A stretch of DNA of 63,687 bases, counting the filler, from Hausera hauseri (taxonomy: Eukaryota), in the NCBI GenBank assembly GCA_046269625.1. It is 12 parts of 12 records of this genome, joined end to end, with 100 filler letters (N's around TTAATTAATTAA, not from the genome) between each part and the next. Parts side by side here need not be neighbours in the genome. Positions count along the whole stretch, not along the records: positions 47,032 to 51,504 come from JBJURY010563783.1; 11 more parts are not named here. One strand, 5' to 3'. Shown here in pieces: positions 47,032-51,504 of the stretch (the first letter of the stretch is position 1; each line of letters starts with the position of its first letter). The notes below the pieces were generated by a model. It had not been told where the DNA came from. It saw only the letters and a list, made by a program, of their open reading frames with translations, and searched no databases. A program made the position numbers and the translations under genes.

Positions 47032-47735
47032 CTACGCATCCTATGCCACGAAAACAAGAATTGGCTGGATGCTTTACCCATCGTGCTATTAGGATGGAGA
47101 AACACTCCAAACACTAGCACTGATGCCTCTCCGGCACAACTATTATTTGGTGCCCACATCACATTCCAACAAGATTTGGTGAGCAACGAGGAAGTAACTT
47201 CAATTCCTGCTTTCAACCAAGCCCGGAAGCATTTCCTGTCAATAGACATAAACCCTGCATTCCACAACAATCACAAAAGACCAATCATGCCAAAAAACTT
47301 ACGAGATGCATCCTTTGTCTGGCTCAAAAGCCAGCAAAGACACGGTTTTGAACCATACTACACGGGCACTACAAGGTCATAGAAATCACTGAGCACAACG
47401 CCAAAATACTGTGCGACAATGAAGAACATATAGTCCACTTGTCGAATGTAAAACCCGAATTCAGTTATCACGATTCCGATACCGAAGATGTTATAAAACA
47501 AAACATACCCAGCACGTCAGAGGTAGACAAACCTCGACAAAACTGCGATAGAATTGATCCATTCAATATGGACACTCCAGTGGCCTATGACCCAACCCCG
47601 GTCCAAGCTGAAACAAATATTACTCCAACGCCCATACTTCCGGAAACGGAACGTACAACAATACTCAACCAAACCCCTGCTGCACCGGTGTCGAGTCGCA
47701 CCAGGAGTGCATCAAAGGTACTTAAACTTCATTAA
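47032..47735 (+). mobile_element. pol: Integrase C-terminus of Gypsy element F
   Basis: WLDALPIVLLGWRNTP..SPAQLLFG, FEPYYTG.YKV (GPY/F module), VHLSNVKP. Confidence 0.85.
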
Positions 47736-47760
47736 AACCCTACAAGCTTGACAGAAAAAA

Positions 47761-47883
47761 TGCCTGATTGCATGCAGCATGCACGTCGCATTAAAGCAGG
47801 TGGGAATCAAACCCACAGTGTCACATTGACACTCACTCATTCCGCTTTTAATAAGCGACGAACACGCCACACACAACCAGGCG
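47761..47883 (-). ncRNA. tRNA-headed long-hairpin RNA, copy 1 (followed by T6)
   Basis: ~38-bp stem with many G-U pairs on the minus strand, AGTGTC/GACACT arm, T-arm GTGGG-TTTGATT-CCCAC. Confidence 0.65.
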
Positions 47884-47967
47884 TGCACAGTTTTGAAATT
47901 AAACGTAGTAAAACTATGAACACATAAAACCTATCGATACGGCCCACCTCGATATCATTGATTTAAA

Positions 47968-48090
47968 TACCTGGTTGCACGTAGCGCAACGCTGCACCAA
48001 AACAGGTGGGAATCGAACCCACAGTGCCAATACCGGCACTCACTCATGCCGTTTTTCATGGGCTGCGATTGCGCTACATGCAACCATGCA
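47968..48090 (-). ncRNA. tRNA-headed long-hairpin RNA, copy 2
   Basis: Same fold with different stem sequence; T-arm GTGGG-TTCGATT-CCCAC carries a perfect B box. Confidence 0.65.
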
Positions 48091-51000
48091 ACGTGCAGAT
48101 TAACTTGACTCAAGTGCCAAATCGAAAAACACTATGGCACTACCAAAAAAACGTGTCCCTTATAATTAAGTCGAGAGCACAAAATGCCGTCTACCATGGC
48201 GCAATAAAAACTCGCCGAGCAACCTAACATTTTATACTATATCCTACGATTGAAGCACAAGTAGTATGTTTCACTTCGTGCCACAGATAAATCAAATTTG
48301 CTGAAATTAATACGAATAAATAGTCTCCAGACTGTTCAACTTCTTCACTTTGTTAATGTGCACCAAATATGGCCTAATTATTCTCAATAAAATTCTAAAT
48401 ATCAGTAGAAATCTGCGCCAAAAACTTACTGTGTTCGACTGTGTCATATAACAACGGAACTCTAATTTTGGACACTAATCATTCTATTAAAATTGGTCTA
48501 ATTTTTAATACTAAAAATACAGATTAGATCACGTCCGCTAACTCATTTTAACTGCCTTGCTATGAAGCAGAGGCGTGCACAGAAAATATTTTATGTGCAT
48601 AGTGCTATTTTGCAAAATAAAATAATACCAATAACTTATGTTATGCATTGTATAAAATATACCCGAAATTGCTATATATTTTTATACATAAACTTTTCAC
48701 TGTCTACATATTCACAGATACAATAGAATATAGTTAGAAGGATGAATTGGGTAAATAGATAACATTGTAAACGAAACAAATTAACCTTCAAAACATCTTA
48801 ATATCCAAATTTCCGTTCCATTCAATGAACTGCTTTCGACACTTCGACATTTTTTCCTGAGAAATTATGCAGTATTTTCGTTAAAAATCTCAATGCATTT
48901 CTTTGCATACAAGGATGATTCCTTAAAATATTTTGCTGTATCATACAAGTACAAAATTTAGTTCTAATTAAGAATATAAAAGAATATTTAGAAAAGTACC
49001 TTGAGACAAAACATCTATTTTCACCCAACTGCTATTGTCATATTCTCATAAGAAAATTCATGTTTTAGCTATGAGTACTGAAATTAAAATGTACTATCAA
49101 AGTGGCAATTATTCTTAGAAAATTGAATTTTTGAAATGACAAATAAAAACGTAAAACACAATACCTAGTAACGATAAGTCGGCGTACTTTAACACGTGGT
49201 ATTAAAATTCGTACAGCCTTGTCTCAACGACCAAACGATTTGTCTGAATTTGACGGTCTGCTCACGATATGTGCTCAACAAGTCAAACAGCTATTGCTAG
49301 TGTGTGGTAGTCATTTGGTGATAAAATAAGTAGCATTTACGCTTTTCGATTGGGGATAAGTACCATCTGTTTTGCCAATATCGTTTCGTTTGACATAAAA
49401 GTATATGGAAATTCTATAAATATCATTCGTAAAAAATTTCAACGTCATTCTACCATTCTGTTCAAAACTCGTTTTCACTTGCGAAACGGGAATATTCAAC
49501 AGAAAATTATATTTCCAATAGCAACGATATTGATCAAGAAATCATGAATTCTGATAGTAAAATTCACATCCAATTGTCTTATTGATTTTCTCCAATTCAA
49601 AATTTTATTCAAACTAATTTGTATTATTTTTTAAGCTAAAATAATTCAACTTAATTTCGTTTTAAATGTCCCCATAAGATAGAGTAAGTTTTGTGAACAA
49701 ACTTTTACAATATGAAAATTGTTAATTAAAATCAGTGGTGCTTAATAACATACCATATAAATGTTATTCAACGGAATAAGATTGCATATAATTAAAACTG
49801 AATTGATAATTTCTGTCATGTGTTTATGTCACGGTTTTCTGTTTCTTATTAATGTCAGCAAATTGAGATATTTCAAACAGCTGCACCCACTAAAATTTAA
49901 TGTTTACGACTAATTATTAACTTGATTCTAATAAAATATCTGAGTAAAATAATCCAATGGTGATGACGTGTTTTCTCTGGGTCACAAAACAATTTGCCGA
50001 TGTAAAATAATTAACCTTGAAAATTTCTGAAAGAGGAAAATTCATTGACAAACAAATTTAGTTTAAGAATCGATATAGTTATAATTTATATATGAAATAA
50101 CTAATATTGATTATTAGAATATCTAATCTTCCAACTGTATAATTTCATTTTGCAATCAACGTCCGTTATCAAAATGTTTACAAGTCGCAATCATTATTAT
50201 TAGAAAAACAGAGTTGAATAAATTTAATTACTGAAATACAGAAGTACAATGTATTAACACCTTCAACGGTAGCAAAGTAAGTTGACAAATAGAAAAATAT
50301 TCATTTGCTAAATATATAAAAATATATCAAAAGTCCACTTGTTGAAACTGACAAAGAAAACAAGAGAAATATCGACTGGAATTCCAGCATACTTTTCCCG
50401 AATTTAAAGGTAAAATGGAAATTAAAGAAAATTCGAAAATAGCTTAACATACTTCTTTGAGGCAGTTTTTTAGTAAGAACTTTGGTATCATTTGGTGATT
50501 CGTAGTTCACTTCACCGACTAGATCTCTATCAGCAGTCGTGATCACTTTTTGTGTCGGATGCAAATCCTACATGATTACCTTTTTACAAAATAATTCCAA
50601 CATCTTACGAAATCTGTTAAAATGGAAACGCATCCAAAGAAAAACTTGAATTTAAAAATTCGAAATATACAACCTGAAAATGACAGTGACAAAATTCATT
50701 ATTACCGTAATAAATAAAACGATTGAATGTAATGATCGACAAATTTAGTTTTTGGAAAATTTCTAAATTTCAAATCTGTGAATAAATAAAGTAATATTCA
50801 AACAAAATTACCCGATTAATTTTTTGTAACAAAGATTTTATTCTAAATTTTTTCAACAATATTTTAATAACTACTCCAAAGAGTCATCACCTTCTTAACT
50901 TACGTTATGAAAATTGTCAATTAAAATTTTAATAATAAATGGTGTGTAATTCTATTTAATCTATTATTGCATTTAGTCAATTCTGTGATGCATTTCTAAC

Positions 51001-51153
51001 ATTTGAAAATTATAATTAAAATATAAAAGTTCGAAAATCAAGGTCGTTAAAATTAAAGTAGTATAGTTTTCTTTTGAATTAAAGGATAAAAATTAAAATC
51101 ATTGCATAAATCTAATTTAAAAAAATTAAAAATTACTTTTAATTTTATTTTTC

Positions 51154-51504
51154 AGGCGGGGGAGCCTTGTAAAGTTCCACTTTACAAAATACTTAAAATA
51201 AAATCACGAATTAAAACAAATTTTTTATTCCCCGTAAAATTTTATCAAATAACAATTTAAAAATCTCAAATAACAATTCAAAATTTAAAATCACAATATA
51301 AAATCACGGGTTCACCCAACATAAAACCAAAAAAACATACAAATATATCAAAATAAAATATGTCACCAAACGAAAATTTCTCCCAAATTCTTATACTAAA
51401 ATTAAAATCACAAAATTACAAGTGCCAAAATAAGCAGCACTTACTAAATAAAAAACAATCAAGATCTGTGGATTTAATACATTTGTTTGAATCCACAGAT
51501 CAAG
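51154..51504 (+). repeat. Candidate PPT (AGGCGGGGGAG) and start of a TGT-initiated LTR
   Basis: Only G-run in ~3 kb of AT-rich DNA, followed by TGTAAAG; same orientation as element F. Confidence 0.45.

Follow-up and report, generated by a model that had tools for sequence, protein, structure and literature searches.

Tandem antisense hairpins with tRNA-like heads behind the integrase of a Ty3/Gypsy retrotransposon of Hausera hauseri

Why should a retrotransposon carry, directly behind its integrase gene and on the opposite strand, two long hairpins whose heads resemble part of a tRNA? The question is posed by a window of 63,687 nucleotides, filler included, from Hausera hauseri (Eukaryota; GenBank assembly GCA_046269625.1), the window being the whole stretch of 12 joined parts to which the piece analysed here, positions 47032-51504 (JBJURY010563783.1), belongs. 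A preliminary description had reported two structured units after the integrase stop and had ascribed them to RNA polymerase III (Pol III). Our analysis suggests that these are two tandem copies of one structured RNA module, encoded antisense in the 3' non-coding part of a Ty3/Gypsy element, and that this module is neither a true tRNA nor a Pol III gene in its own right but an unknown kind of antisense RNA. That the minus-strand RNA structure has been kept by selection as part of the element is a proposition which, from the sequence comparisons set out below, we consider evenly poised.

Fold, pairing and strand of the two units

The hairpins and their parts are listed here, with minimum free energies (MFE) in kcal/mol.

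47762-47882, minus strand: hairpin copy 1; MFE -68.3, z -7.62; 49 pairs, 8 of them G-U; covariance-model score 140.5 bits
47793-47848, minus strand: head of copy 1; acceptor-like 3' strand at 47793-47799, 5' strand at 47842-47848
47800-47816, minus strand: T-arm of copy 1; loop TTTGATT, B box with 1 mismatch
47817-47833, minus strand: 7-bp arm of copy 1, with a 3-nt loop
47834-47841, minus strand: 8-nt linker of copy 1
47883-47967, minus strand: spacer between the hairpins, where the two repeat units align poorly
47968-48090, minus strand: hairpin copy 2; MFE -65.3, z -6.51; 47 pairs, 4 of them G-U; covariance-model score 150.1 bits
47999-48055, minus strand: head of copy 2; acceptor-like 3' strand at 47999-48005 (T4 on the minus strand), 5' strand at 48049-48055
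48006-48022, minus strand: T-arm of copy 2; loop TTCGATT, B box exact
48023-48040, minus strand: 7-bp arm of copy 2, with a 4-nt loop
48041-48048, minus strand: 8-nt linker of copy 2

None of 200 dinucleotide shuffles folded as well as either hairpin. In a 130-nt sliding scan of the piece, the two hairpins are the two deepest minima, about 9 standard deviations lower than the remaining minus strand of the element, which averages -33.2 +/- 3.7 kcal/mol. The paired spans (47882 to 47762 and 48090 to 47968) bear out the earlier report of two minus-strand units of about 120 nt, and also its remark that they share one fold despite unlike stem sequences. The unit starts are 206-207 nt apart. Similarity between the copies falls from a nearly identical head through stems with about 74% identity to spacers that scarcely align.

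Each hairpin consists of an imperfect stem of about 37 bp that ends in a three-way-junction head. The junction holds an 8-nt linker (AAUGAGUG in copy 1, CAUGAGUG in copy 2), a 7-bp arm with a loop of 3 or 4 nt, and a 5-bp T-stem with a 7-nt loop (UUUGAUU in copy 1, UUCGAUU in copy 2). The purine-rich linker occupies the place of the tRNA D-arm, and the 7-bp arm stands to the side. The T-stem adjoins both the arm and the 3' strand of the main stem with zero bases between on either side, and the 7 pairs below the junction together with the 5 T-stem pairs give a 12-bp stack as in tRNA. The tRNA-type features found are thus a 7-bp acceptor on a 5-bp T-stem with no base between and a 7-nt T-loop (UUCRANN), from which copy 1 departs by the replacement of C56. 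Directly below the seventh pair, bases of the 5' strand are left unpaired (a single A in copy 1, three or four bases in copy 2); the opposite 3' strand continues paired in both copies.

All of the parts named in the preliminary description were recovered. The linker (A/C)ATGAGTG is present in both copies, as is the T-arm GTGGG-TTYGATT-CCCAC with its B box (GGTTCGATTCC, without mismatch in copy 2 and with one in copy 1). Two details had to be revised. The acceptor-like 7 bp (AAAGCGG/CTGCTTT versus AAAACGG/CTGTTTT) exist, but not as a separate helix, since the segment runs into the basal stem and only the unpaired 5'-strand bases interrupt it. The covarying arm (AGTGTC/GACACT versus AGTGCC/GGCACT) is likewise present, but measures 7 bp with a loop of 3-4 nt, and is therefore not anticodon-like.

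Do the differences between the copies respect the fold? The comparison covers the two full copies and 45 consensus pairs. Seven of these pairs have changed on both sides and are still paired, none is broken, nine have changed on one side and are kept through G-U, and a tenth is G-U in both copies. The 90 paired positions contain 23 substitutions, every one a transition, and no indels, while the 42 unpaired positions contain 7 transitions, 5 transversions and 4 gaps (Fisher p 0.0024). The transition share among family copies, taken from contigs, is 0.66, with which 23 transitions out of 23 have a p of about 7e-5. On these counts the stems are purged of transversions, which would break pairs; without selection, transversions would not be excluded. 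A third variant of the arm, at a contig joint from 48026 to 47828 with 7 inserted letters, has G-C as its seventh pair, the counterparts being A-U (copy 1) and G-U (copy 2).

Which strand carries the structure? On the minus strand the consensus pairs include 11 G-U pairs (7 in copy 1, 4 in copy 2) and zero mismatches, and on the plus strand the same 11 positions are 11 A-C mismatches, in line with the earlier claim that many G-U pairs work on the minus strand only. These counts therefore indicate that pairing has been selected on the minus strand, with RNA as the most likely level of action: 11 A-C mismatches, with all others barred, would not be accepted if selection acted on the plus strand or on duplex DNA. 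With DNA parameters the two strands come out nearly equal (minus versus plus, -32.9 versus -29.0 for copy 1 and -38.9 versus -35.1 for copy 2), and the preference for G-U therefore points to RNA and not to minus-strand complementary DNA (cDNA). With RNA parameters, copy 1 gives -68.3 kcal/mol on the minus strand versus -44.6 on the plus strand. One-way deamination of the APOBEC or repeat-induced point mutation (RIP) type was considered as a source of the G-U pairs and ruled out, since the one-sided differences are a mixture (4 C/U, 5 A/G) and changes across the family show strand symmetry (A>G 48, T>C 41, C>T 32, G>A 31).

Hairpin 1 was also set against the family majority. Among the well-supported differences listed (47758, 47805, 47824 and 47835) none is a stem pair, and for this reason the G-U pairs of copy 1 seem to be family features rather than private decay. 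At 47805 (T-loop), 47824 (arm loop) and 47835 (linker) the window copy differs from nearly all family contigs, and is therefore not a typical family sequence.

Several points weigh against a selected antisense structure. One is its distribution. Twenty metagenome loci encode relatives of the integrase piece, and 16 of them, with 38-48% integrase identity, have enough sequence for a hairpin comparison. In these 16 a covariance model built from both copies had no match, no tRNA and no Rfam family was found, and no comparable hairpin follows the integrase (best z -1.1 to -4.1). As the module is missing from relatives at this level of identity, it is lineage-specific. Searches further afield gave 0 matches for two head patterns in viral and prokaryotic genome contigs, 0 matches in metagenome contigs for the longer head pattern, the only one used there, and nothing in viral contigs searched with the integrase protein alignment.

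Folding energies call for similar caution. Minus-strand folds are about 11 kcal/mol better throughout the element (per 130 nt), and the best folds lie on the minus strand in 16 of 16 relatives too, owing to the A/C-richness of the coding strand (A 0.35, C 0.27, G 0.17, T 0.21) and the corresponding G/U-richness of the minus strand. The gap between the strands for copy 2 (9 kcal/mol) does not exceed this background gap, and the plus-strand versions of the hairpins still fold well (z -4.7 and -5.5). A lower MFE on the minus strand was rejected as proof of strand, since it is general to the element and its relatives; in A/C-rich Gypsy elements, better antisense folding alone is no evidence of antisense RNA. 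Pair-type counts were used instead, which are not affected by the A/C bias in the same way as energies. The support from pairing is itself a comparison of the two copies available in full, the other genomic copies being represented by summary tables of Logan contigs. No RNA runs containing the stretch were found.

The element that carries the hairpins

What kind of element is it, and where in it do the hairpins lie? The relevant features around the module are these.

47032-47370, plus strand: integrase C-terminal region, first frame, from translation and phmmer relatives; cut by the piece edge at 47032
47373-47735, plus strand: integrase C-terminal tail, second frame, from alignment with relatives; stop codon TAA at 47733-47735
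47755-47760, either strand: run of six A on the plus strand (A6; T6 on the minus strand), immediately 3' of hairpin 1
48091-48285, plus strand: tail of the repeated element, with a TATA-like TTATAATTAAG at about 48160-48170 and AATAAA at 48203-48208

The integrase region contains a frame shift at about 47368-47373, and this copy of the integrase is therefore defective; the alignment with relatives places the ...Y.GP..V... motif across both frames, which were searched separately. Pfam did not recognise the integrase piece itself. A phmmer search with it (HMMER scan, 1.8 billion representatives) returned 228 relatives; the best, a 1079-aa Pol, is matched at 45% identity over its residues 816-926. 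In the long relatives the domains run in the order RVT_1, RT_RNaseH, Integrase_H2C2, rve. Judged by this domain order, the carrier of the hairpins is a Ty3/Gypsy retrotransposon, of which the piece itself holds the integrase C-terminus only. The Gypsy attribution of the preliminary description thus held, as did its placing of the units just after the integrase stop, hairpin 1 occupying 47762-47882.

Run X1 holds a 1701-nt Logan contig identical to 49061-50761, and X1 is therefore the same organism as the window. Its summed contig depth runs from 60,000 to 2,000 over 47032-48231, versus 15-40 in the unique flank, and the integrase end with the hairpins is therefore a very high-copy repeat. Depth drops from 2122 at 48082-48231 to 39 at 48232-48381, a unique contig begins at 48269, and the GC content is about 0.45 until about 48230 and 0.2-0.3 thereafter. 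The high-copy repeat ends between about 48231 and 48299. The hairpins belong to it: hairpin 1 has a summed depth of about 20,000, the same as the integrase 3' end and far above the 15-30 of the unique flank; a contig 83% identical to the window covers 47587-47834, from the integrase into the head; and run X2, coded as another organism, gives the same picture of integrase-linked hairpins. The linkage to a Gypsy family proposed earlier is supported by all three observations, and the hairpin module is part of a very high-copy Ty3/Gypsy family.

Within this family the arrangement is not fixed. Contig joints indicate that some members have a single hairpin, of the type of copy 2, where hairpin 1 stands here, and 21 contigs of X1 and 6 of X2 have a loose end at 47883, with other sequence from there on; the number of units and the spacer therefore vary. 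In the one-hairpin variant (joint from 47744 to 47988) the A-run, T6 on the minus strand, is replaced by other letters.

The location of the hairpins is either the 3' untranslated region (UTR) or the U3 part of the 3' long terminal repeat (LTR). The integrase stop is followed by 25 nt ending in AGAAAAAA, then by TG, then by hairpin 1, and the repeat ends near a CA at 48284-48285. From these letters there may be a 525-bp 3' LTR that starts with the TG at 47761 and has both hairpins in U3, with the tail as its R/U5 side. The A6 followed by TG at 47755-47762 and the TATA and AATAAA motifs at 48160-48208 fit this arrangement. If the hairpins are in U3, the T6 would simply be the complement of the purine tract AGAAAAAA; T6/A6 could be either a Pol III terminator or part of a purine tract. 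Two findings run counter to the LTR with its polypurine tract (PPT), namely the loss of the A-run in the one-hairpin variant and the form of the junction in the relatives, which have A(n)GGGGGC before the LTR. There the A(n)GGGGGC lies 20-100 nt behind the integrase stop and leads into TATGTGG or TATTGTAG; no junction motif of the A(n)GGGGGC type occurs in 47736-48300.

At the loci L003, L006-L008, L010, L011 and L013-L016, A(n)GGGGGC is followed by TATGTGGTG or TATTGTAGTG, which represents the PPT and the LTR start. The LTR sequence after the PPT junction of the relatives is extremely AT-rich.

Explanations for the module and their weight

Does the module belong to any known RNA family? The Rfam scan of the piece found no family at or above threshold anywhere. 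Below threshold, copy 2 matched tRNA-Sec (21.7 bits, cutoff 47) and mascRNA (20.9 bits, cutoff 42.5, E 0.85), and copy 1 matched tRNA (19.0 bits, cutoff 29), the D and anticodon arms being deleted in the tRNA-type alignments. ARAGORN called 0 tRNA genes at standard and lowered thresholds, and the calls of its permissive mitochondrial mode are in another register. A true tRNA (RF00005 or RF01852) is ruled out by ARAGORN, by the sub-threshold Rfam scores and by the 7-bp arm with its 3-4-nt loop. Membership of mascRNA-menRNA (RF01684) was rejected on a score below the gathering threshold, seen with copy 2 only. A microRNA (miRNA) precursor was rejected as well: Rfam gave no miRNA family at E <=10, and a conserved head with variable arms is the reverse of the miRNA pattern.

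The preliminary description had favoured independent Pol III genes with an internal tRNA-type promoter and a T-run end, the RNA being cut by RNase P/Z and Dicer, or serving as a decoy like virus-associated (VA) RNA, or as a primer. Some of the evidence speaks for this. The B-box consensus GGTTCGANNCC is matched with 0 mismatches in copy 2 and with 1 in copy 1, and 0 of 100 shuffles reach three matches; copy 1 does end in T6, as had been stated (plus-strand A6 at 47755-47760); the Rfam matches, weak as they are, are of tRNA type; and LTR elements with Pol III-type modules are known in Helenus, Cassandra and Ajax (PMC10886601). Against it, no A box (TRGCNNAGTGG; tRNA positions 8-19, some 30-60 nt before the B box) is in place. 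A-box matches with at most 2 mismatches near the heads (47813-47823 and 48019-48029) abut or overlap the B box, and 16 A-box-like matches were found versus 8.9 expected. The single B-box mismatch of copy 1 falls at the C, and most family copies of its type have a T at this invariant B-box/T-loop C56. Copy 2 has no terminator after the hairpin, where only TTT follows, and has a T4 inside its 3' acceptor strand; the T6 itself is absent in the one-hairpin variant. A type-2 promoter starts transcription about 10-20 nt before the A-box position. With this geometry of tRNA genes the start would lie inside the 37-nt 5' arm, and the selected basal stem would therefore not be made whole. Self-standing Pol III RNAs thus find little room here; the Pol III reading of the module is weak, and we regard it as quite improbable.

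Three further explanations were weighed against the same facts. A captured tRNA fragment, or an insertion like a short interspersed element (SINE) or a miniature inverted-repeat transposable element (MITE), could have been duplicated and carried along as a functionless passenger. LTRs in Repbase quite often contain tRNA parts, and the proposed origin of Helenus is the insertion of a SINE into an LTR (PMC10886601); the module is also lineage-specific, and the number of hairpins per element varies. A passenger would decay, however, whereas all 23 of 23 stem differences keep the pair and are transitions, the transversions and indels being confined to the loops and the spacer. Inspection of the sequence revealed no target-site duplication or direct repeat flanking either hairpin, the copies are linked to the integrase end, and the terminal repeats of a MITE give no reason for G-T to be preferred to A-C (11 to 0) on a single strand. 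We hold a passenger to be unlikely. If it is one, the matter is still of importance for annotation, as thousands of copies in this genome would be annotated as loci of tRNA-like or hairpin small RNAs.

The plus strand could instead provide, near the 3' end of the genomic RNA, a docking site for the primer tRNA that bridges the genome ends for strand transfer in the style of Ty3 and Drosophila gypsy. Precedent exists in the 11-nt 3' primer-binding site (PBS) of gypsy, whose complement lies in the anticodon and TpsiC stems of the gypsy primer tRNA, and in the bipartite 5'-3' PBS of Ty3 (PMC1635307), and the 17-24 nt complementary to a canonical T-arm are the best-conserved part of the module. 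Such a site leaves unexplained the 37-bp stems, the compensatory changes and the 11 plus-strand A-C mismatches, and it would be buried in the folded plus-strand RNA. The acceptor-like strands AAAGCGG and AAAACGG, which we take to be unlike the end of a nuclear tRNA, also count against docking, and this explanation appears very unlikely. Least probable in our estimate, and decidedly so, is an element that acts as DNA, whether through B boxes that bind TFIIIC as a boundary or insulator for the LTR promoter, or through cruciforms or hairpins in minus-strand cDNA. The B-box match, the position adjoining a possible LTR promoter and the folding of the hairpins with DNA parameters (z -5.5 and -6.8) are compatible with it, but recognition of double-stranded DNA gives no cause for compensatory changes in the stems, G-T is little better than A-C in DNA energies and leaves the asymmetry of 11 to 0 unexplained, and the key C of the B box is lost in copy 1.

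How might a selected minus-strand RNA structure, as favoured here, work? Its working form would be an antisense RNA, most likely within a longer RNA polymerase II (Pol II) transcript, antisense or divergent, from the LTR region, arising from a putative divergent promoter or by read-through. The contrast between a conserved head and a freely covarying stem argues that the head is recognised and that the stem has only to be double-stranded. The head would then be the functional part, a mimic of the tRNA elbow for RNase P/Z or other tRNA-binding factors, and the stem would need only to pair. A cut at the head would end antisense transcripts short of pol, possibly with a duplex of about 30 bp left over. 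RNase P, RNase Z and other readers of the tRNA elbow need an acceptor/T stack with a T-loop, as in the processing of mascRNA and of the tRNA-miRNA-encoded RNAs (TMER). The head may suit readers of this type because it offers the 12-bp stack, the T-loop, a purine-rich strand and unpaired bases on the -1 side. The specific processing step, a Pol II antisense transcript cut at the heads, is in our view doubtful. Slightly more doubtful is the idea that antisense elbow-capped hairpins of a Gypsy lineage recruit RNase P/Z, and possibly the CCA-adding enzyme or exportins, to cleave antisense RNA and release duplexes of about 30 bp. If it were true, the arrangement would serve either to blunt RNA interference (RNAi) against the element or to yield small RNAs by which its copy number is set; the released mini-tRNA might also prime the reverse transcription of the element itself.

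Our literature search found no description of an antisense, hairpin-embedded tRNA-like module without D and anticodon arms beside an integrase gene. The nearest relatives in kind are the TRIMp3 elements, with a tRNA-like (Helenus) or 5S-like (Cassandra and Ajax) sequence in their LTRs (PMC10886601). The tRNA-like part of Helenus contains A and B boxes, is sense-oriented and presumably drives Pol III transcription; Helenus elements are short (311-1263 bp) and non-autonomous, those of animals depending on Gypsy elements (PMC10886601). Like these, the present module belongs to an LTR-retrotransposon lineage and is a terminal, non-coding module resembling a small-RNA gene, with a B box and no working tRNA. 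Unlike Helenus, it is antisense to the integrase, lacks an A box, a D arm and an anticodon arm, sits inside a 37-bp hairpin, is tandemly duplicated, and lies beside and contiguous with an integrase open reading frame. With mascRNA/menRNA (RF01684) and the TMERs of murine gammaherpesvirus 68 (MHV68) it shares a reduced tRNA-like fold within a longer transcript or joined to a hairpin. In those RNAs the acceptor/T stack is read by RNase P/Z, which frees the neighbouring piece, and the flanks are single-stranded; here processing is hypothetical, and the flanks pair with each other over about 30 bp.

The 3' PBS of Ty3 and gypsy shares with the module the setting of a Ty3/Gypsy element and a T-arm-complementary sequence near the 3' end of the genomic RNA. 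Those sites complement a real primer tRNA, and that of Ty3 is reportedly about as short as that of gypsy; the present locus differs in having the complement of a whole mini-tRNA in a long hairpin, and in that selection is seen on the opposite strand. As in tRNA-derived SINEs and MITEs, the units are short and repeated and possess a B box (as a SINE does) or a long inverted repeat (as a MITE does). Unlike these, they lack an A box, a LINE-type or poly(A) tail and a target-site duplication, remain linked to the integrase end in diverged copies, and have mismatches that are all G-U on one strand. So far, tRNA- or 5S-like LTR modules are known as sense-strand Pol III promoters of tiny non-autonomous elements, and tRNA-like cleavage signals from a few host long non-coding RNAs and one herpesvirus. 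An antisense structure maintained by selection in a very abundant Gypsy family that has an integrase would put tRNA mimicry to another use, and would offer a handle on how a retrotransposon deals with its own antisense transcription and with RNA silencing.

Other features of the piece

A small hairpin occurs on the minus strand at 48112-48141 (AGTGCCA...TGGCACT), with the arm letters of copy 2 and TTCGATT in its loop, and could be the remnant of a third head. As a third, degenerate copy of the module it was rejected, the covariance model giving no match there even with filters off.

A second high-copy repeat lies at 51082-51504 (summed depth 1,900-13,700 in X1). Within it, at 51150-51175, CAGGCGGGGGAGCC and then TTGTAAAG form a close counterpart of the PPT/LTR-start junction in the metagenome relatives, GGCGGGGGC TATTGTAGTG; the repeat probably represents another Gypsy copy, of canonical type, at its 3' end and LTR start. 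At the end of the piece, 51463-51501 contains a 15-nt inverted repeat, GATCTGTGGATTTAA / TTGAATCCACAGATC, with 93% identity and a 9-nt loop; a sub-threshold Rfam match of this segment to LhrC is meaningless. The AT-rich flank between the two high-copy repeats (48600-51050) contains short direct repeats at 48774/50004, 49599/50832 and 49705/50900, with 72-89% identity; they share a spacing of about 1.2 kb and may be traces of a degraded repeat or of an old tandem duplication that has decayed.

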